This document shows positions 35,497 to 57,368 of a stretch of 64,000 bases of DNA, piece after piece. The stretch's first letter is position 1; each line of letters starts with the position of its first letter. The stretch covers positions 46,004,001-46,068,000 of the forward strand of contig OZ241826.1 in assembly GCA_965202585.1 (NCBI GenBank). The letters are read 5' to 3'. Both the position numbers and the translations under genes were made by a program. Source of the stretch: Thalia democratica. Its lineage: Eukaryota. The notes beneath the pieces were generated by a model. The model was not told where the DNA came from and did not search any database. It saw only the letters and a program-made list of their open reading frames with translations.

Positions 35497-38400
35497 ATGA
35501 GGTTTATACTAACTCTAAGCTTAGTGTTACTTGTTTATCTAAATAATGTGTCTTGTTTCTACGTTCCTGGAGTGGCTCCAGTTGAATTTCAGATTGGTCA
35601 AGAAGTTGAAATAAAGGTTTGTTGTCTGCCTTAAAAAGTTTATTTCTTACTTTTTACCTTGTACTAGTTTTTGTTTTAAAAATTATTTAAAAATGAAGAT
35701 ACTCATAAAGTTGTATGATATGGTATACATACAATATTAAAGTGAGATATATTTAAGTATCTTATTAAAACAAATAAAACTTGAAAAAAAAGTTATATTT
35801 TTGTTTTATTCATTACTAGAATTTTATTTAACAAACTATCAAATTATATTACATTTTAGGGTGTGAAAATGACTAGTTCAAAAACACAATTACCGTATGA
35901 ATATTATTCACTACCTTTCTGTAAACCTGAAGTTGTTGAATATAAAACCGAAAATTTGGGTTTGTTTTGTTTTCTTAATAAAAATTCTAAAAAAGGCTTG
36001 CTTGTATACATAAACATTTCAAAATGTGAATGTTTTTTTCAAAGTAGCCTAAAATTAATCTTCAAGACTTATGACAGCAATAATTAAGATGTATTTTTGT
36101 TGAGCAATATCTTGAAACATTAAAATACATATAGTATTATTGATTTTATTTTTTGTTTGAAACTTAGAAATAATATTTTTTTCATTTTAAAAGTAAATTA
36201 ATTAAAATATAAGTTTTAATGTTTAAATTATGTTAAATTATTGTATTGACTTTGATATTTTTATAATTTAAAATAGTGTTAAAAAAAGCCACATAAATTT
36301 GTCTAAATAATTTTTCAATGTTAAACCATTTAGTATTTTATTTTTAATTTTTTAAAAGCATGACTTGAGTGGAGTCAAGTGAATTTAAGAACTCATTTTA
36401 AAGATAAACTTTAACTAAAACATCAGGCGAGGTGTTGCGTGGAGATAGGATTGTAAACACTCCTTATGTTGTTAAGATGAAAAAAGAGTCTCAATGCAAT
36501 GTCTTATGTGAGAACACGATAACTAAAGATCAAGCAAAATTATTTATAGAAAGAATTAAGCAGCACTACTCTGTTCATTTGTTAGTTATTGTTTCTTATA
36601 TTTGAACCCTATTAATTGGGTATCAAATTTACTGTAATACTGTACAAAATAGCAATAGAAAAACATTTGTACAAGAAAAAAGTTAACTTAATACTTTTTT
36701 CTAAATTTGAAGACAAAACCCTAATAAATATTAATATTAACTTTTTATTAGTAACAAAAACAATATGAAAAATGTTAAAAAAGATTCCAGTAGATAAAAA
36801 ATAAACAAAACAAATGGTTGACAGGTTAGCTGACAACCTGCCATCAGCAACACACATAAAAATGGAAAGTGAGGAAATAGTCGAACATGGTTACAAGCTG
36901 GGTATTCATCTCAATGATGAGTCTACTTATATCAACAATCACCTCGTCATCAAAATGAAGTTTTTATTCTTGCTAATTAAAGAAATATCTTTATAACTAG
37001 TCTAAAATTTAAGCATCAAGGTTTTTTACTTGCACATTTTTCCTTTAAAATCATAAAATAGATTTTAGTAAATGGATATTGCATATGTTATATATAAGTA
37101 ACTTTATCGAATTATGTTTAGTTTTGTTATTTTAAAATTAAGTCGTACTTGTTTTATACTTAATGAAAATATTTAAAATTTAAAATTTATTTATGCAAAA
37201 GCTTTAAAAAAGTCATTTCCATTCAATAAAAAAGAATTGGTACATAATGATCAAGCACTTGTAAAAGTTTTGTCTCTGTTTTAAATTTTTCTGTGCTTTT
37301 AACAACAAAAGCTATCATCAAATGTTAGACTTTTTAGCCCGAAAACATTTATAAGCAAAATAAAAAAATATATTCCAAATTTTTATAGGTACAACGAGAA
37401 TCAAGAAGATTCAACGTTCCGCGTTGTTGGTTTCGAAGTGATACCAGTGTCGCTTTCCAGAGCTTCAGTGAATGTAAAAGACGGTATGTGCACTGTTGGT
37501 GAGCAAACTGCAAAGGAGAAAATAACCGAAGCAACAACATCAGTATTGTTCACCTACCAAGTTAAATGGGAGGTTTGTAGTTTTGTGTTATACTACCAAA
37601 ACGTTATTTTTTGCTGTATAAGTTAAAAAACTACAAGTATTTAAAAAAAAAGATATTCATTATTAAACATTTTAAGCTTGTCTATTTTTAAAAGTAAGTC
37701 ATAACATAAAAGTTAAATAAAGGAATTTCAAAAATTTATTTTAACTTTAATAAAATGCATAGTAATGTTAATTAATAAATAAACCAAGTTTTTTCTACAA
37801 CATGACTATCAAGCAGGAATTCTGACAAAGTTTTAATAAAAGCAAATAATATTAAACTAATGTTAAAACTCTAAACCTTATTCATTCACATCAAAATTTG
37901 TATTGGAATTATATTTTTCTAGCAAAGTGACATAAGATGGGCATCCCGGTGGGACAGCTATTTGTCCATGGGAGACGCGCAAATTCACTGGTTTTCCATC
38001 GTCAACTCAATTGTTGTTGTGCTCTTTCTTGCTGGTTTGTTGATGTGGTTATATGTGCAAATTTGTGTCAAGTAAAAGCCTATAATTTATTATACATTAA
38101 AGACTTATGATTATTTCTAAACCATTCAAATATGTAAGCGTTTGAAATCTTTTATCAATTGTAATGTTTTCCTTGACGTTTTGTTAATAAATATGGTGAC
38201 ATTTGCATGTTTATTTTTCGCTCTTTAAAAAGGATCTTACCAAATTTTAATTTATAAGTTAGTTATAATATTATTTTATTAACCGTTTAAGTTTATCTTT
38301 CTCCAAAGACCACTTATCATCTCTAAACTATTCAAATGTATAAATAATATATTTTTTTTTAATTGAAAGTCTAAACCGCAGGAGTGCTGACGATGATCAT

Positions 38401-41400
38401 AGTGCGAACTCTGAGACGCGACATCGCTCAGTACAACAAGGAAGACGACGACCTGGAAGACGCGTTGGAAGAAACCGGATGGAAATTAGTTCACGGTGAT
38501 GTCTTCAGACCCCCCAGAAGAGTTTGTTTATTTGAATTTTTAGTATCACAAAATAATATATTTTGTGTAATAATTAAAATTCATAAGTTGAAAAACTTTT
38601 GATAATGCTTCTTATTGTTTTTAATAAAACATTTAGATCATGTTGCTGGTTTCGTTCTTTGGTGCTGGCGTGCAGTTGTTCGGTATGGCGATAGTGACAA
38701 TAGTCGTGGCCATGTTGGGAATGTTGTCCCCTTCGTCCAGAGGTTCGCTGCTCAACGCCTCTTTCGCCTTGTACGTCCTCATGGGGTTAGTTTGTTTTAG
38801 TTGTGCATTAAACTATTAAATTTTTCAAGTTAATTAATTTATTTTAAACTATTCATCATTTTACTTCTATGTTTCTGTTTTTATTCACAGCCCAAAAGTT
38901 TATACTTTAAATATTGTAAACTGTTCGTTGCTTCCAGTTCTGTTTGTAAACACAATTTGAATACGACAGTGTTTTTGGCGGGTACTTCGCCGGAAGGTTG
39001 TACAAATCGCTGAAAGGCCAGCTGTGGAAGCGTGCTGCCGTGCAGACTGCTCTTTTATACCCCGCCGTCGTCGCCACCATCGCCTTCATGCTCAACTTTC
39101 TCATCTGGGGCAAGCACTCGTCTGGCGCTGTTAGTTTTGTGTTTAAAAAGTTATTTTTTTGATTTGTTTTACAAAATGAGAATTTTTTAATTAAATAAAA
39201 ACATGTTTAAATAGCTTCAATGAAATCAATCACCAATAATTTTTACGGAGTACTTTTAGGTTGTTTACTTGTAATCATCAACACAATAAAACTGTTATTA
39301 ACAATGTAATATTTAACAATATTTTTATTAGCTAAAATGTTATTGATTAACTCTGTAATCGATCAAAATATTTTTTTAATAGCCACATCTATTAAGCATG
39401 CAAGCATAAAGCATAAGTGTTCATTTGTAAACAAATAAAAATCTTATAGTTTTGTTTTTATGGTGAGAGTGAGCTTTCAGTTTTGTTGTATGAAATACAA
39501 CAGTTTTTTTCAGAACTAGCAATAACAAGTAGTGTAAATGCTAGTTAACACTTATGAAATTTTCCAGACGCTTGTAAATATTTGCTCTTTAAATGTGTTA
39601 ACCTGAATTATTTTAAGTAATCACTTTCTAAAGTAAACTGGTTTGACTGCATTTGTAGTTTTCGTAGCAAACTTTCTGACCAACTTGTTACATTTCTTCC
39701 ACCACATTTTTTTATATATTACAAAATATTTTATACTATTTATATTAACTAACTCTGTTTCTAGTCTGTTGATATCACATCTTTTTAACTGAATAATAAT
39801 TTTATAGCTTGTCCAAATTTTATTATAAACTGTAGTAATTTGAGCATTAAGTTTAATAAAAATATTATAAATATGTTTATTATATATAGAGTTATATATA
39901 TTATAATTATATAATTTTTGATTGTATTTTAACAAGTTACTCAACATAAAACTTCAACTTAAACATTTCAGCTGCCGTTTTCAACGATGGTGCTGATACT
40001 GGTGCTGGTGGTCGGAGTGTCGCTTCCGCTAACGCTCGTCGGTTTCTACTTCGGTTACAGGAAGCAGGCTTACGAGAACCCCGTCAGAACGAACCAAATT
40101 CCCAGGCAGGTGCCGGATCAACAGTGGTACAAGGGATCAATTGCTAGGTATTTGAAGTTTGAGAAAAATGATTCATGTAGAATAAGATAAATTTTAAATA
40201 TTGTATATTACATGCAGTTTTTATTAAATTGTTTTTGGTTAAAAAGCTGTAAAAGTGTGTTTTTTTATTTTGTATTTCTAATATATATTTTGTCACTTTA
40301 TTTTGTACAAATATTGTATTTAGTATGGAAATGATTAATTTTGTAACATTAATTTTTTTGTAACAGTGTTATGATGGCTGGTGTTCTACCTTTTGGTGCA
40401 GTTTTCATTGAACTCTTCTTTATATTCACTGTAAGTTATTAATACTATTTTATTGTGACTCTATCTTGTTTTTAAATTTAAATTTATTATTTTGCAGTTT
40501 TCTTTTAATTACTAGGCTATGTTTAAAATTTTTATCATAAAAATAAAAATTTTCAACTAACAAACTAACAGGCTATTTGGGAAAATCAGTTTTACTACAT
40601 GTTCGGTTTTCTCTTCCTCGTATTTGTAATTCTGATCATCGCCTGCAGTCAGATTGCCATTGTCATGGTCTACTTTCAACTGTGCACAGAGGTTTGTACT
40701 TTGATTTTTAGATTAAATTTAAATTGAAGTAATGAAATTTTAACCAGCTTTGCTAAGCTCAAAGTAGAGTAGATTTTACAATCAAGTAACAGCAAATATA
40801 TTAAAAAATGTTTTAAGTAATTTTCCAAACGCATTGTTATGTTTTTATTTAATTAAATATTTTTATTCAAAGGACTACCACTGGTGGTGGAGAAGCTTCA
40901 TGGTATCCGGAGGATCAGCCGTCTACGTGTTCCTCTACTCGCTCTTCTACTTCCACACTCAGGTAATAAACTAAGCGCTTTTGCGGTTTTCAAACTAATT
41001 ATTGATACCTTTACTATTTTTTAATGTTTTAAAAGTGTGTATTATTTTAAACGAAATCTATACTAAGTATAGATTGATTTATTTGTGTATAGTTATTTTG
41101 AATTTTTAAAATTATATATTTGTGACCTGGAATAATACAAGTAAAAGAAAGTTTATAATTTCAAGTATATCTTGATATTTTTATATAATTCTTTTATTAT
41201 TACTATTTTAAGTTTTTAAAGTTAAACATCTGTCATTACTACTATCCTAATAGATTATTCAGTAAGTACTTAAAATTTTTTTTTATGAGACTTAAAAGCA
41301 ACTTAGTTTTGAGTTCTATATTGTAACTACAGTACACTACCGCTTAAGTACGCAAATTGAACCCGACCAAAAAGTGCGTACTTAGCACGGGTAGTGCGTA

Positions 41401-42994
41401 CTTTTTGAAGACATAGTATAATAAGAACTTTAGTTATTTGTTTTCTTTCTTACAACTAGCCACCAAATAATTAAGCCAAATAAACAAGTCTTTTTATTTT
41501 AAATAACATTTAATACATAATTCTAATCTGCAAAACTTTTTATTAGATTTTAAAATGATTTATTTTGTCTATTATTTATTAATATAGAAAGTCAATGTCA
41601 GTCAAAGGTATAAAAAAGAATAATAAGCCATATTTTGTTTTGTTAGAGGTAAAGTACCAAACTACATTGTGTTTACCAAACATTTTGAAAACATCAATGT
41701 GTGTACATTTAAATTAAGTTATGACTTAACTATGTTGTATTTGTAGGTTTTTTTAGCTTTGTCATCTAGATTTATTTATTTAACCGCATTACAGCTCAAA
41801 TATCATTGTTCTTTTCACTTTTCTGCAACCACTACATAAGTATTTAGTTTATTAACTTTTAATATCAGGACTGTCACAATTTCAGGCTCGTTAGACTACT
41901 TAGGATTACTCACGCTAGTTTAAAATTTGTGAAAGTCTTAGGCTAACTCAGCAGGTTGGCCATTCTACCTTTCTTGATAAGTGCGTACTTAAGGCGTGAT
42001 GCGTACCAAAAAAAGTGCGTACTTAAGCGGTAGTCTACTGATTTAAACTTTTTATTGTATTAATCTGATGTTATTGTATTGTATAATTTTTTAAAGTTTA
42101 GTTTAAGCTGTGTAAGTTTAATTATTTGTAATGATTACAAATTTCCTACGTAGCATGATGTAATTACAGTTTTTATGAGCATCTAAATTAACGTTAACAA
42201 AGTTCTACTGTTACAAAAGTTTCTAAGGTTTTTATAATGTGTTTTTAAATCTTAGTTAGAACATACAAAAGTTGTATATGTTTTCGTTGAGAAATATATA
42301 AAAATAATCTTTGTTGTTTTAAAAAGTTGTTGAAAATAACAAATAGTTTTCTATTTAAAGTTTAATTATTTTTAGCTGGCACACTAAAAAAAAGTTGTTT
42401 ATATTTAAAACTTTTATTAAGCAATCTGAATTTGAAAAGTAAATTTTTTTTTTCAAAGTTTTAGAAGTTATCAAACTTCCTCCTTAAGGTCATAAAATTG
42501 GTCCTAGTCCGCACGTTAGTTGTTAATTAAAAAATTGCACACATATGATTATATAAAACATCGGTACTAGCTAAAAAGCGTACATTATTATTCTTAAATA
42601 TTGCGATTCATTTCTTATGATAATTTTTATTAATTAATTAAATTATTTAATGTGAATTTTATAGCATTTTAAAATTTATTGTAAATTACATATTTCAAAT
42701 TGAAACAAAACATTAGTTTTCAATTATATGCTTAATTAAGTATAAAAAAACGCATTTTTAAAAATTAAAATAATAATTTTATAGAAGTAGAAGCTTTTTT
42801 TTTTAATTTGCATATGATTTAATTTTTTTTTATTATTTTTACAGCTGAACATCACAGCGGTCATCCCGACGATCTTGTACTTCGGATACACAGTCATCAT
42901 CGTCATCACCTTCTGGATTCTCACCGGTTCCATCGGCTTCTACGCGTCCTACAGATTCGTCAGGATGATCTACTCGCAAGTTAAAATAGACTGA
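35497..42994 (+). CDS. TM9SF4: Transmembrane 9 superfamily member 4 (nonaspanin), complete, 617 aa
   Basis: Exons 35497-35616, 35860-35959, 36427-36580, 36825-36959, 37389-37572, 37923-38034, 38382-38521, 38637-38785, 38970-39129, 39972-40147, 40367-40430, 40572-40691, 40873-40962, 42845-42994 (1854 nt, all in frame). Signal peptide followed by FYVPGVAP; [13 protein letters not shown]; [17 protein letters not shown]; WASRWDSYL; [17 protein letters not shown]; [12 protein letters not shown]; [13 protein letters not shown]; DYHWWWRSF; C-terminal KxD motif (VKID). An acceptor just before the ATG implies an unlocated 5'-UTR exon. Confidence 0.97.
41330..42040. mobile_element. Tc1/mariner-like MITE in the last TM9SF4 intron
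   Basis: 25-bp TIR CAGTA(C/G)ACTACCGCTTAAGTACGCA at both ends, TA on the left flank; a second copy lies at 52095-58172. Confidence 0.8.
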
Positions 42995-45900: not shown

Positions 45901-47960
45901 AAACTTTCAAATATTTAGGTACTTTCAGCACGACATGAGTTTATTTAAGAATAAGTTTTTCAAATCTTTGTTTTAGTTAATTTAGATAAATTTGAAATAC
46001 AAACTAAAAATAATTTTTTTCTTCTGATTTGTAGTCACTTTTATTAGTTTAGTTCATTGAATGACAAAAAAAGCGCTAAAAAAGGTAGTTTACAAAAGAC
46101 CTTTCGATATTAGAGTCGTACACTATTTGAATACAGTTTAACGTCTTGTCCAGGACAGACAACTTTTTCTTCAACAATACTCGAAAATAAAAAACATTTT
46201 TAAAATTTTTATAGAATAATTTTAGTTTAAAGCGTTCTTTTTTATTATCTAAACGTTTTATTAAAAATCTAACGTGTATCAAAAAATATATATGAGTTTA
46301 GCTTTAGCTTAGTTTCAAAACAAATCTTATTTTTTTATATACAAAATGAGTAGAAAAATATAATTTAGAAAGTTACTATTCTGAGTCTGACAGTTTTGAT
46401 CTAAATTATATAAAATTGTAAACTTCATTAAAATTTATTTTTTGAAAGATTTACAAACTTTAACTTTAGACGAAATTTATTTCTTCATTTCAAGCAAATT
46501 GGGCTCACTGTGGTTTGCACACAATGTAAATTGTTTTAATACCACTATTTTCTTGAAGAATTAAAAAAATCTTTATGATTTCGTTTTATGAAAGCCTTAA
46601 AGACCATTTAAAACAATTTAAATCTATTTTGTTGAAAACCTTTGAGATCAAAAACTTAAGTAATTCTAATTAATTTGTTATCATGGTTCAATATTTCTTT
46701 AGTTTAGCATTGCTAAATTCACAAGTCTTGGAAGAACTTAAAAAAATAACTATTTAAGTGAAACAAACTAAGTTTAAAACAGAAATACTGTTGATATTCA
46801 GTAATTTGTTAAAATTAAGTTTTTATAAAACCTAGAAAAAAAAAGAGATATGAACAAAGTTTCCAAAAAAAACATTTGGCCAACCTGACAACTGTGTACA
46901 TTTAAATCTGTGAATTCAATTTTTATGTGCGTTTTTGTATTAATCTTAAAGCATTATGTTATTATCATCAGAGCTATTAAAATTGTAATTAAGATGTTCT
47001 AAAGTTAAACATTTTTAGTAGACTAAGAAAGAAAATAATAATTTAAAACTAGTGTAGGGTATGTAACGCATTAAAATTAATACTTCAATTCTAATGAACT
47101 CTATTAATAAATTATTTTTATTTAAGGTATTTTGTGCGCCTTAATTTCAGCACTGTTAGTTTGTTAAAAGTTTTCAATAAAGATAATTCTCAAAAACAAA
47201 GCTAGAAATTTTGACTGTTTTAATCAGCTATATTATTTGTAAAATTTATTAGTTTGGGACTATTTATATTACAACAAAGCTAGATTATAGTTATTTGCCT
47301 AAATTTTTTTTACAATACTATTAAAGAACAAATTTAAAAAACTTATTTTTTCTAAATTTGCATCTACTTTAAACTAAAATAAAACTCCACAACCCCCTTT
47401 AAATTTTTGAGATTTAAAGTGACATTATATAAATTTATATCTTAAATTTATAATTTTGCTATGTTTTTGTAGACATTCTTTTATTAGCAGCTTATAAAGG
47501 ATGTCTAAAACGAAAGTCAAACGAACGTTACATGATATAATAAGACACAAAAAAGGAAGCATTAACAAGCCAAAGCTGCTTAGTAAAGCAGTGTAAGTGG
47601 TATATTTTGTTACTGGTGTGTATTATAGCTGCCAACAAAGAGTGATTGAAGCTATAAAAATGTCGTTTTGTTTACAAAATCCAGAATTTGAGATGCTAGA
47701 ACCGTTGCTTTAAAACAGCATGGTTTAAATTTGTTAAACTAGGTTGTTTTAAAACTAACTCTTAATTTAAATAAAAGGTTAACAAAAACATTTTTATACT
47801 TGGAAAAAAACTTTTGAAAATAGCAATTAATGAAACGAATGAAAAAAATATAAGTTATGTTTTCCAAATTGCCATTTGGCCACTTAAAAATATGCTTTTG
47901 CGTTTAAGTGCATTGTTTCCCGGGTAGGCCTATACTGCACCGTTCTACTTCAAGTATTTA

Positions 47961-48977
47961 CTAATTAGCACTGCTACTTGATAAAATTTTTATTTGTTGA
48001 GCAACTTTTTTCATTCTTGGCAAAATCAGCTTTTCTAAAACTCCACGCATTAATTCATCTTCACTATTTACTCCGTTTGTCTTTTTTATGTCTGATAGAG
48101 CCCAAAAAGCTCTTTTGGCAAGATGGGTAGTGGGCATTGCAACTAGTTTGTTTACTGCTAAAATCGCAAGAGATTTGTAATTTGAATCTTGAAGCGTTTT
48201 AACCCAGAACTCTGAGTAGGAACTTTGAAGCAATTCGCTTTTTTTTACCAAATCGTTTTTCAATTCTATCAATTTGCCTGTTTTTTCTTCGTTATTCAAT
48301 TTGGCATCATCAACATCCTGAATGACAAATGGGTTTACAATCCACTTATTTTGATTAGAGTCATCTGAAAAATCTTCAAGGTTAAACTGACAATTAGGAT
48401 TGTTTTTTTCAATAAAAGCTCTAAAATCTTTCTACTTTTTTGCTTTTCCAGAAGTGTTAACAGCAACACACTTCTCCCACTGAAGCTTTTCTGCTGTGAA
48501 AAATTCTTCTAACTTTGTAAAAATGCTGGTTCCTGTTGAGTCGACACCAACATAACCGCAGAAAAGCATGTGGTCTGAAATTTTGCTGGTACTTGCGTCT
48601 GGAAATCTTGCAAACACCAGCAGGTAAGTTTCACCGAACTGATCAACACTCACATGAATCAGTAAGCCAAAACAGGGCGAATCACGTAATTTTACTAACA
48701 ACTGATCTTTCAAGTCTTGGGCTATCAGCGTGCAATTACTTACCATTGTGTTCTCAGACAATGAAATTTTTTTCATGCTTTCAAGTTCTTCACTTTCTCC
48801 AAGGATAGTTTCAACAGTCATTATTATGCAGTCTTTTATTACTTCTTCAGCATAAGTAAAGGGTTTTCTTTCTTTCATCAACATATGAGATACTTCTAAT
48901 GACGAAAGTATTTGACGATCGCTTTGATTATCTTTGTTGTTGCTCAAAGAAGCTGATTTTTGGTTGTCAGATGCCAT
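47961..48977 (-). CDS. hAT (Buster/Charlie; FAM200/SCAND3/ZBED8-like) transposase-derived ORF, catalytically dead, interrupted by one in-frame TAG (pseudogene, readthrough or small intron)
   Basis: The two track ORFs are in the same frame and the gap between them has no further stop: 339 codons with a TAG at 48434-48432. Homologous motifs: LEVSHMLMKERKPFTYAEEVIKDCII; ISLSENTM; CFGLLIHVSVD; WEKCVAVNTSG; KWIVNPF; SEFW; MPTTHLAKRAFWAL. No BED finger and no flanking TIRs seen. Confidence 0.85.
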
Positions 48978-49639
48978 TTTATTTTAATGAATTTTAACTA
49001 CTTAAGCTGCAGATTTTTTACCTTTCTTATCTATAAGCTGTATGAAATTTTTTATTTTTTTGTTTAATTATTTTGTTAAAAACATAATTTGCTATCTTTT
49101 AAATTTCTAAAATATGGTATAGGACTTAAGTTTTTTAGAACAAAATTCTTAACTTATACTTTTCTATTCAAATCTAAAAAATATCTATAAAAACATGTCA
49201 AACAAAAAATTTAAGAAAAGTCAAGTCTTGAACTTATAACTTTGTATATACTAAATTATAAAACTAAAGTACTAGTTAAATAAAATAACAAGATTAAGTA
49301 CTAGTTAAACAAGATTATCATTAAATTTTTTCATTAGAAATTGATCAAATTATTTTCAAACTATTAAAGCTAGTTTGGTAAATTTAATCTTGAGAAAATT
49401 TTTAGTTCTATAAGTAAACTTAATTTATAGACTTGGAAATCCTAGTCCCAAAAAAGAAGGGTGAATACTTTTTGCCTGTAAAGTTAATACCAAAACAAAA
49501 ATAATATGTTTGTATTTTTCAGTTGCATTAAGATTTCATTTAAAAACTGTATACCTTTATTTCGAGGGAAAGATTGTTTTTAGAATTAGTTTGTAGCTCT
49601 AAAGTTTTGTCTTTATTTTTAGTTTTAAGTTAATTTCTA

Positions 49640-49880
49640 AATAAGAAACTATGTTAAGTAGTATAAAAACATTGAAAAGATCCTGTAAAGTTACTTTAAA
49701 TGTATTTTTAATAATTTTTTTTTGATGATGACAAAAAAATCTTATTTATATGATAGATTTTTTGTGTTAAATCAAAATTTTACTACATAAAATGTTAAAA
49801 TTATCAAAAATACCAGGTTTTTCCAAGTTATTTTTGCCTAAATTGTCAATTTTCATGTTTTTCCAGGTAAAGTGCCAAAA
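49640..49880 (+). repeat. Truncated copy of the 52154-52507 MITE
   Basis: Shares AGTATAAAAACATTGAAAAGAT.CTGTAAAG, TTTGATGATGACAA and TTTTTCCAGGTAAAGTG with 52262-52500. Confidence 0.6.
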
Positions 49881-53189: not shown

Positions 53190-53437
53190 ACTATCATTTC
53201 TAACTCGCTATTTTTTCTAACCAAATCATTTCTAACCCGATCACTTCTAACCCGATCACTTCTAACCCGGTAATTTCTAACCCAATCACTTCTAACCCGA
53301 TCATTTCTAACCCGATCACTTCTAACCCGATCACTTCCAACCCGATCATTTCTAACCCGATCATTTCTAACCCGATCATTTCTAACCCGATCATATCTAA
53401 CCCGATCGTTTCTTACCCGACAATTATTAACCCGATC
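53190..53437 (-). repeat. 15-bp tandem array (TCTAACCCGATCA[C/T]T)n, about 16 units
   Basis: Directly visible; left arm of the foldback element. Confidence 0.95.
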
Positions 53438-55456: not shown

Positions 55457-57109
55457 ATAGTTAGATATATTATATGTTAAACTTAACTATAAAAGTTAAG
55501 TTTCGAAAACTTATTATTTTGTTTTTTTTTTCTTTCAAAATATGATGTATATAGAGAAAAATAAATTTACATTTATCATGAAAATTTAAAAGTTTTTAAA
55601 ATTTAAAATTCCAAAAACAGTTTCTCACGATTAATAGTAGAAACTTCTTTAAAAAAATTATTGATATATTTTAAAAGATATTGTTTCACAGGTTTCCAAA
55701 AACACAAAAACTTAAGATTGTTAGCGATAATTAAATATGAGTTATTTAATTAATTTATATAATTTAAAAACTTATAATAAAATAATAAAATTTGTTTGTT
55801 TTGTGAAACTCTAATATAGGTTTAAGTTTCTAATGAAGAAAAAACTTAGAGGTGCAAAAAAACACCGAGAATAAAGTCAACAGACTTCAAACTGGCTTTA
55901 CTGTAATGAATAAAAAGTAAATATGTTGCGTGTAATAATCGTCCGAAAAAATAGTTGATTAAAGGAAACAAAGAACTTGATGGAGTTTTTATAAACTTCT
56001 GCTCCTAGTTATACTTAATTTAACTATAACTAATTATTACTCTATTTCAAAATGTTTTTTCAGTAATTAATTCGTTTTCACTTAGGTTATTTTAATTGAT
56101 CACAAGTAAGTAAATTTTAAAGAAATTTTTATCAACTAAAGTACTAATTTAAGTCGTAATTGAAACATTTTGTATATTATATAAATTTAAGTGAATGTTT
56201 TTAAGAAGATTACCTGGGCGAGATTTGATTAGACTCGGACTTGTTATACAAATAAACATGTCTGTTTAACTATTAGTGACTTCTTTTGCTCAAGGACTAA
56301 GCAGGAATTTATTAATGATGTGAAATCAAGGCGGTCAATCGACGTAACATACTTTTACGGTTTGTTATATGACATAACTGTTTTAATATCTAGGTTATAC
56401 CTAAAAATCATGCTTTTTCACTTAAAACAACAAAAGTATTAATTTCTCCTAGTGTATGTTTGAATTTAATTATCTTAATAGGCCTATGCAAGTTGTATAA
56501 CAATTTGTAAAAGTTATTAAAATGAAACTTATAACTAACCTAATATAAAACGTTAATACATTAGTCAGCAATAATACCACATTTACAACAGACTTACAAT
56601 GTAGTTTTTAGACCGTAATATAAAGGTTTTTATATCTGAATATTACAATTGTAAAGGTTTACTTTTAAAAATTTGCAAATGTTAAAATTATTATAGTCAC
56701 CTGAATTATTATAAGATCCAACTTAAATATAGTTATAACTGCTTACTTTAAAGTCCTACAAAGAATAGTTCAAAATATTGTAAAGTAAACAATTTAGTGA
56801 ATTATATAGGATTATTGAAAAACGTCTGTTATAGTAAATTAAAAGAACAAATAAACATGAAATAATGAAAAAAAAAATTGAAATTGTGTGTAAGATGAAA
56901 TATCAAAAAATGAGGTAATAAAAATAGACTAAACTTATGTTAAGTTAATACTAAAATTAAAGTATATACTAACAACGTTTTTTACGTAACACATTAAAAT
57001 CATAATGTTTTAAAAAAACTAAAAAAAAAAAAAATTACAACTTTATTAAGACTAGTTTGTTTTTGAATGAAATCCAGATTAAAAAATAAAAATAAAATAA
57101 ACAAGTATA

Positions 57110-57368
57110 ATGGGTTAGAAATGATCGGGTTAGAAGTGATCGGATTAGAAGTGATCTTGTTAGAAATGATCGAGTTAAAAGTGATCGGGTTAGAAGTGAT
57201 CGGGTTAGAAGTGATCGGGTTAGAAGTGATCGGGTTAGAAGTGATCGGGTTAGAAGTGATCGGGTTAGAAGTGATCGGGTTAGAAATAATCTTGTTAGAA
57301 TGATCGGGTTAGAAGTGATAGGGTTAGAAGTGATCGGGTTAGAAGTGCACGGGCTAGAAATGATCGGC
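57110..57368 (+). repeat. 15-bp tandem array (GTGATCGGGTTAGAA)n, about 17 units
   Basis: Directly visible; right arm of the foldback element. Confidence 0.95.

Follow-up and report, generated by a model that had tools for sequence, protein, structure and literature searches.

A probably domesticated, lineage-restricted mini-hAT gene with a recent nonsense variant in Thalia democratica

A 64,000-nucleotide stretch of the Thalia democratica genome (assembly GCA_965202585.1, contig OZ241826.1, positions 46,004,001 to 46,068,000 of the forward strand), which will be referred to as the window, carries on its minus strand a frame of 339 codons that is derived from a hAT transposase and is broken by a single TAG at codon 182. 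We regard this frame as most probably a lineage-restricted, domesticated derivative of the Buster/FAM200-ZBED5 type, encoding a 'mini' protein of ~338 aa that would act as a non-catalytic homodimeric binder, with the internal stop being a real nonsense variant. It was compared with an outgroup, the Tara lineage, which is known from metagenome contigs and represented by the orthologous protein P0006, and with public genomic contigs from the locus itself, among them X1 (organism A) and X2 (organism B). The features of the locus are as follows (window coordinates).

47958..48977, minus strand: whole frame of the hAT-derived gene, with which the 337-aa orthologue P0006 aligns end to end
48978..49014, minus strand: 37-nt conserved leader; homology to every outgroup contig starts exactly at 49014
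48678..48920, minus strand: N-terminal all-helical domain (residues 20-100), equivalent of the intertwined dimerisation/DNA-binding domain of Hermes, with the predicted homodimer interface at residues 21-71
48378..48677, minus strand: RNase H-like core, beta1-beta5 (residues 101-200), the best-conserved part with 82% identity to the orthologue
48654..48656, minus strand: His108 in IHVSVD, by alignment in the column of the first catalytic Asp (Hermes D180)
48450..48452, minus strand: Ser176 in NTSG, by alignment in the column of the second catalytic Asp (Hermes D248)
48432..48434, minus strand: in-frame TAG at codon 182, a nonsense variant that is polymorphic: X2 has TAT (Tyr) here and the Tara lineage CAC (His)
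48366..48401, minus strand: deletion junction NPNCQF/NLEDFS, where an alpha-helical insertion domain of ~205-210 aa (with HCxxHRE) is gone in frame
47964..48377, minus strand: C-terminal helical region (residues 201-338) with WIVNPF, HLAKRAFW and ELMRG, corresponding to the hAT C-terminal region
48114..48116, minus strand: Lys288, by alignment in the column of the catalytic Glu (Hermes E572)
47602..47957, minus strand: downstream flank homologous to the outgroup locus, with 71% identity and 11 gap events, diverging at about the synonymous rate

An initial annotation, made from the letters of the window alone, had described one frame without frameshift, a single TAG at codon 182 and a terminal TAG-TAA, and re-translation agrees: the ATG lies at 48977-48975, the sole internal stop at 48434-48432 and the closing TAG TAA at 47963-47958. 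The window has a GC content of ~25%, and stop codons make up 8.1% of all codons over its six frames; ~28 stops would be expected per 339 codons, compared to the one seen (P(≤1) ~1e-11). The two pieces on either side of the TAG are the longest open reading frames (ORFs) in the surrounding 22 kb. An in-frame TAA stands 9 nt upstream of the ATG and stops close all three frames within 37 nt, so that no N-terminal extension, and hence no BED finger, can be spliced on there, in line with the absence of this finger reported initially.

The family to which the frame belongs is hAT, Buster/FAM200-ZBED5 clade. A six-frame search of the 801-Mb genome yielded ~100 related stretches, and the nearest three loci encode BED-bearing proteins of ~640 aa with the motifs QLDESVD, TTDGAAAM, HCMLHREAL, WIMNPF and TYLAEKGFS. 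The consensus of a 50-sequence alignment reads LQxDESTD / CTDGA / HCxxHRE / VRWLSRG / WIxxPF / TTYLCExxFS, and a profile of these 50 relatives matches the Hermes transposase (E = 2e-4), with the catalytic residues D180, D248 and E572 of Hermes falling exactly on these motifs. PF27073 (FAM200-ZBED5_RNase-like) is the precomputed Pfam annotation of the orthologues and of other relatives; a Pfam scan with a release predating PF27073 gave nothing useful for the two pieces, the orthologue or the paralogues, and PF05699 was not triggered. A weak zf-BED match (E = 0.0016) was obtained in the paralogue L002 and none in the window gene.

In an alignment with 40+ family members and Hermes, H108, S176 and K288 occupy the columns of D180, D248 and E572: IHVSVD replaces LDESTD, NTSG replaces TDG, and HLAKRAF replaces YLCE/YLAEK. 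The Asp-Asp-Glu (DDE) triad by which hAT transposases are recognised is thus lost, and the same replacements are found in the orthologue. The two halves of the gene are ~66 nt apart vs ~690 nt in the nearest paralogue; ~205-210 aa are therefore missing between NPNCQF and NLEDFS. The absent part is the all-alpha insertion domain (HCxxHRE, VRWLSRG), which lies inside the RNase H-like fold. The C-terminal hAT region is present, with WIVNPF, THLAKRAFW and ELMRG aligning with the family and with Hermes 538-590. The motif-by-motif replacement of the triad, the in-frame deletion joining NPNCQF to LEDFS and the retention of the N-terminal helical part and the C-terminal region, all proposed in the initial annotation, were confirmed by these alignments and, for the helical part, by the model described next.

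The AlphaFold2 model of the orthologue (predicted local distance difference test, pLDDT, 88.5; predicted template modelling score, pTM, 0.85) consists of an N-terminal helical domain (20-100), the beta1-beta5 RNase H-like sheet (101-200) and C-terminal helices. Foldseek searches with this model returned Hermes (E = 3e-5) as well as ZBED5, FAM200A/B/C, ZMYM6 and SCAND3 at template modelling (TM) scores of 0.80-0.82 by query, with the insertion domains of these proteins skipped in the superposition; the deletion thus appears to have cut out one domain cleanly, with the fold left closed. The RNase H-like part, dead active site included, is the region most conserved in the orthologue. A homodimer via the N-terminal helical domain is predicted: the dimer model reached an interaction score from aligned errors (ipSAE) of 0.51 vs 0.00 for the best control, with at least 63% of the contacts common to the runs and a partner pLDDT of at least 79. 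Of 30 proteins solved as one-chain pairs, 21 attained this mark; of 23 solved as single chains, none did. The predicted interface (residues 21-71) is the counterpart of the intertwined dimer domain of Hermes.

An exhaustive HMMER search among 1.84 billion representatives gave one outstanding match, P0006, a protein of 337 aa that is 78% identical to the window gene, the alignment beginning at residue 1 of both. The 90% cluster around it comprises eight proteins, six of which are 337 aa long; P0157 and P0158 are the halves of one frameshifted gene on the JGI contig L032, and metagenome assemblies at ENA, marine or unlabelled, are the source of five members, of which three belong to Tara Oceans (PRJEB4352). 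IHVSVD, NTSG, LAKRA, the deletion junction and the SSSSAN terminus are common to all cluster members, and His (CAC) stands at the position of the window TAG. Since the Tara lineage shows the same catalytic replacements and the same deletion, both predate the split of the two lineages. The Tara-lineage contigs have both flanks in common (93-100% identity) and therefore represent alleles of one locus. Between the lineages the downstream flank is homologous over at least 356 nt, and the unique upstream flank of the outgroup was found neither in the window nor in its genome. The check for a syntenic orthologue suggested in the initial annotation thus gave an intact 337-aa protein with a homologous downstream flank, but upstream flanks that are unrelated from -37. 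No further orthologue was detected among 5.8 billion clustered proteins, where P0006 as query found its own cluster only; a homologue search with the C-terminal piece gave no match within its length window, and metagenome contigs contained no match to the protein query or to the exact WIVNPF-codon DNA pattern.

Two further observations concern the upstream flank of the outgroup. Its far part (L025:1-190) is a repeat of ~80 bp tandem units that occurs in hundreds of copies, ~87% identical, in the window genome, and the two lineages are therefore probably close relatives. The proximal 121-165 nt are 99-100% identical among the Tara alleles (L025-L031), compared to 97-99% for the ORF and 93-96% for the downstream flank; they could represent a constrained promoter.

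The comparison of the two lineages points to a domesticated gene that has long been under purifying selection. The ratio of non-synonymous to synonymous divergence (dN/dS, omega) between the window and the Tara lineage was 0.36-0.42 at a dS of ~0.36 by pairwise Nei-Gojobori estimates and 0.43-0.45 under a maximum-likelihood codon model, in which fixing omega at 1 costs 13.5 log-likelihood units (likelihood ratio test, p = 2e-7). Fixed differences amount to 84 non-synonymous to 47 synonymous (p = 2e-5 vs neutrality), and the identities at codon positions 1, 2 and 3 are 0.86, 0.88 and 0.78. Polymorphism within the Tara lineage is skewed in the same way (31 non-synonymous to 19 synonymous, p = 0.003 vs neutral), so that constraint is still acting there. 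The downstream flank is 71% identical with 11 gap events in ~370 nt; the 1,017 nt of the ORF contain a single indel, a whole codon, vs ~30 gap events expected at the flank rate (P ~2e-12). In a neutral simulation at 16% divergence the probability of at most one stop was 0.002.

The window copy is unique in the 801-Mb genome, the next best matches being 47% (N part) and 45% (C part) identical, and no set of copies flanked by terminal inverted repeats (TIRs) was found there. The view taken in the initial annotation, that of a streamlined and selected protein rather than random decay, is therefore upheld by the single copy, the intact 337-aa orthologue, a dN/dS of ~0.43 that is significantly below 1, and the lack of frameshifts despite an indel-rich flank. 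An origin as a retrocopy was rejected, as homology runs beyond the likely poly(A) site and no parent gene exists.

The nature of the internal stop was examined in four public runs at the locus, which are genomic contigs and not RNA. The X2 contig spans 46841-49031 at single-copy depth, with 10 differences from the window in 2,190 bases. At plus-strand position 48432 it has A, whereas the window assembly, X1 and X8 have C, so that codon 182 of X2 reads TAT (Tyr) and its frame is fully open. S3T and N17D distinguish X1 in turn from the assembly, so that at least two haplotypes carry the TAG. Given that the outgroup has CAC, the most parsimonious path leads from CAC or CAT via TAT to TAG. Rather than an assembly error, the TAG is a real nonsense variant of recent origin; it occurs in samples of organism A and not of organism B. 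The initial annotation had offered a recent nonsense allele or a sequencing error as one option for the stop: the allele is borne out by TAT in X2 and CAC in the orthologue, and the error is refuted by the occurrence of TAG also in X1 and X8. If expressed, the TAG allele would give a product of 181 aa.

Two of the other variable sites and the surroundings of the stop may be mentioned here. At 48929 the assembly has N17 where X1, X2 and X7 have D17, and at 48971 it has S3 where X1 has T3; in both cases the assembly state is derived relative to the Tara lineage. The 1-nt frameshift of the outgroup contig L032 (L032:~540-560, corresponding to window 48432-48449) lies in the same A-rich tract, GGAAAAGCAAAAAAG, that borders the TAG, and this tract may be a mutational or sequencing-error hotspot.

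Several observations weigh against the preferred explanation. All seven ORF variants among the assembly, X1 and X2 (S3T, N17D, *182Y, D202G, N215S, R311H and S335G) are non-synonymous; the probability of seven non-synonymous and no synonymous variants, small numbers as these are, is 0.04 under an omega of 0.43 and 0.21 under neutrality. N215S falls in WIVNPF and R311H in ELMRG, two motifs conserved even among active transposases, and both changes are on the X2 haplotype. Diversity in the ORF (6/1020) is not below that of the flank (4/1171), and an omega of 0.43 corresponds to only moderate constraint. Synteny with the Tara lineage is one-sided, the upstream flanks being unrelated beyond -37. 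The runs at the locus are all genomic, and the only hint of expression comes from the ends of L032 (1,102 nt, with a 1-nt frameshift): this contig starts exactly at -37 and ends 30 nt after an AATAAA, positions which, judged from the sequence, look like mRNA ends. L032 belongs to a series (JGI sample 3300018893) that may be a Tara metatranscriptome. Furthermore, the nearest transposase paralogues in the genome are all broken, and the favourable dimer prediction may reflect memory of Hermes dimers in the model.

A refinement of the preferred explanation, rather than a contradiction of it, is that we are dealing with the young pseudogene of a formerly domesticated gene, whose function was recently lost in the window lineage and which is now drifting, with its promoter region replaced and the nonsense allele common or fixed in organism A. 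The presence of TAG on at least two haplotypes (assembly and X1) and in X8, the excess of non-synonymous variants, the motif changes on the X2 haplotype and an ORF diversity equal to or above that of the flank all fit this refinement. Homology to the outgroup ends abruptly 37 nt upstream of the ATG, and the window sequence beyond is unrelated to the very stretch that is 99-100% conserved over 121-165 nt in the outgroup; likewise, the AATAAA following the outgroup stop is not conserved in the window. However, the X2 frame is still entirely open, the numbers are small, and the upstream rearrangement may lie in either lineage. Polarised substitutions are moreover balanced between the lineages (12 vs 9, p = 0.66), and any relaxation must therefore be very recent. 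We consider recent loss a serious candidate and stop just short of favouring it. Within the limits of these small numbers, we infer that the gene was kept for most of its history and is now dispensable, or only beginning to decay, in the window lineage; such an apparent relaxation had not been anticipated in the initial annotation.

Well-known examples of domesticated hAT transposases in vertebrates and plants are the ZBEDs, FAM200s and SLEEPERs; they usually keep the BED finger and the insertion domain, and often the DDE triad. Domesticated genes of the Buster type are well described, the ZBEDs generally retaining the DDE triad, the BED finger and the alpha-helical insertion, and C7ORF29 is an example of a truncated hAT-derived derivative (PMC3606216). 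Mammalian ZBED5 (Buster1), FAM200A/B, FAM200C/ZBED8, SCAND3/ZBED9 and the C-terminal region of ZMYM6 belong to the same hAT clade as the window gene (PF27073, TM 0.79-0.82), which like the mammalian Buster-derived genes is a host gene present in one copy, has no transposon ends and shows purifying selection. Unlike the ZBEDs, it has neither a BED finger nor the insertion domain nor any of the three catalytic residues; it has about half the size of the mammalian Buster-derived proteins (570-1,325 aa with the insertion domain) and, in contrast to their genes, is confined to two closely related marine plankton lineages. C7ORF29 (ZBED6CL), the truncated vertebrate gene, belongs to the Ac clade rather than to Buster and arose independently; in the window gene, by comparison, the deletion removes the insertion domain cleanly and a complete predicted RNase H-like fold remains. 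Neighbours in the ESM Atlas are GTF2IRD2/FAM200-like clusters with representatives of 530-760 aa, with the exception of one 270-aa SCAN domain-containing protein 3 cluster, and none of these neighbour clusters matches the 337-aa architecture. The window gene represents a separate domestication of narrow distribution, in which the reduction went further.

With the Hermes transposase (PDB 2BW3, 4D1Q, 8EDG) the gene shares a homologous N-terminal helical domain, RNase H-like core and C-terminal helices, and the dimer through the N-terminal helical domain seen in Hermes is predicted for the window gene as well. It differs from Hermes in the change of D180/D248/E572 to H/S/K, the lack of insertion domain, BED finger and TIRs, and in not being mobile. 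Before the known lineages split, an ancestral element lost its BED finger and, in frame, its insertion domain of ~205 aa, and exchanged D/D/E for H/S/K, while keeping the N-terminal helical dimerisation domain, the RNase H-like core and the C-terminal hAT helices, for which a compact fold is predicted. The resulting protein is unable to cut DNA; its gene occupies one, probably fixed, locus without transposon ends and was maintained by moderate purifying selection (omega ~0.43) over a divergence of dS ~0.36. Its function would be that of a non-catalytic homodimeric binding protein, most likely through protein-protein or nucleic-acid contacts of the conserved dead active-site face. The TAT-to-TAG nonsense variant is carried by organism A samples and not by organism B, and in the window lineage the gene looks dispensable or at the start of pseudogenisation. 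What holds for the protein in any case is that it cannot catalyse transposition and is selected.

A more specific role as poison subunit for related hAT transposases is possible but found no support, and a dominant-negative repressor or scaffold, as envisaged in the initial annotation, is a conjecture of the same kind. The KP protein of the P element and dominant-negative Ac derivatives are inactive, shortened transposases with a multimerisation surface; KP retains a DNA-binding THAP domain, and the elements that encode it are multicopy and internally deleted. The window protein resembles them in being catalytically inactive and shortened and, according to the model, in retaining a multimerisation surface. 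Unlike KP, it is encoded by a single-copy gene and lacks the DNA-binding finger, and no intact cognate transposase (44-47% subfamily) was found in the genome. A literature search on truncated dominant-negative hAT proteins returned nothing relevant. The three nearest paralogues (44-47% identical) are all broken by stops or insertions: L003:1180-3114 (G000 C7:64.66 Mb) holds a BED-hAT frame of ~644 codons with one in-frame stop, the N and C parts of L002/L014 (C2:91.55-91.56 Mb) are ~13.8 kb apart, which suggests an insertion, and the third copy, L004, is broken at several points. Intact members of this subfamily were not seen in the genome, where only more distant Buster-like ORFs of 580-598 aa (~28-32% identical) look intact. 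It appears unlikely that the gene encodes a naturally minimised hAT core, with the RNase H-like fold resealed after excision of the insertion domain, which serves as homodimeric, non-catalytic poison subunit or decoy to damp Buster-type transposases in a genome full of their non-autonomous derivatives and is now disappearing from one lineage owing to the extinction of its cognate transposases.

Still less probable than such a repressor is a low-copy mobile unit, i.e. a rare non-autonomous hAT whose truncated protein serves the element itself, for instance as a regulator of transposition, and which sits at different loci in the two lineages. The abrupt start of inter-lineage homology 37 nt before the ATG, with unrelated flanks upstream, would be explained in this way. 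Yet there is one copy per genome or lineage, a DNA-binding finger is absent, and on the downstream side the homology reaches at least 356 nt further, with a neutral-like level of divergence. No convincing TIRs bracket the ORF, as had been stated initially: the best inverted pairs (21-31 nt, 74-81% identity) are no better than background, being among 226 such pairs in 4.2 kb of ~23% GC DNA. No 8-bp target-site duplication was recognised, the 3' limit of the unit not being defined. A weak inverted match between the 5' edge and ~47575 was rejected, as it is at chance level and not conserved.

That the stop is bypassed in the TAG allele, either by splicing of a 51-nt intron (48471-48421) or by readthrough, to give a long product is very improbable. 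The letters of such an intron exist, with GT at 48471-48470 and TTTAG ending at 48421, and its length is a multiple of three; to this extent the initial proposal was correct. However, CVAVNTSGKAKK, the peptide encoded there, forms a core beta-strand (E170-177 in the model) and recurs unchanged in the orthologue; its removal would be predicted to break the RNase H-like sheet. The intron was therefore rejected, since it would take away the conserved CVAVNTSG strand, which is kept as coding in all outgroup contigs including L032. Readthrough or a variant genetic code, the former likewise raised initially, found no support, since TAG is the true terminator of the gene in both lineages, and the open frame of X2 requires no bypass. 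A neutral relic of a dead hAT element, i.e. a long frame without any selected function, would match the repeat-rich intergenic setting, the stop codon in the reference, the loss of catalytic residues and domains and the lack of RNA among the runs at the locus, but is effectively refuted by the selection, indel and stop tests (omega below 1 at p = 2e-7, third codon positions least conserved, one in-frame indel against ~30 gap events expected, P = 0.002 for at most one stop under neutral decay) and runs counter to the identical architecture and intact ORF across a dS of 0.36.

The preferred reading, a domesticated mini-hAT gene, implies that selection keeps a half-size version without BED finger, insertion domain and DDE triad, and points to the N-terminal dimer domain together with a dead RNase H-like core as an independent functional unit. 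A domesticated gene with a nonsense allele under one taxon label that is absent in a close relative amounts to a natural knockout, offering a way to ask what role the gene plays and how such genes disappear again. If the protein were indeed a poison subunit that is now being lost, the birth-to-death cycle of a transposon-derived transposon repressor could be observed here.

The ORF is located ~5 kb past the last exon of a plus-strand TM9SF gene (ending near 42994), in repeat-rich and apparently intergenic DNA. Exons of this gene, a member of the transmembrane 9 superfamily, were recognised at 38384-42994 (plus strand), including a C-terminal piece. The segments 49496-49863 and 46000-46183 are extremely high-copy repeats, with a summed k-mer depth of 3e5-1e6 in X1/X2 vs ~100 for single-copy DNA; they presumably correspond to the elements resembling miniature inverted-repeat transposable elements in the initial annotation. 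Finally, two inverted copies of a minisatellite at 53200-53394 (minus strand) and 57067-57303 (plus strand) contain an open frame reading (G/E)LE(V/M)IGLE, which is probably a tandem repeat and not a gene.

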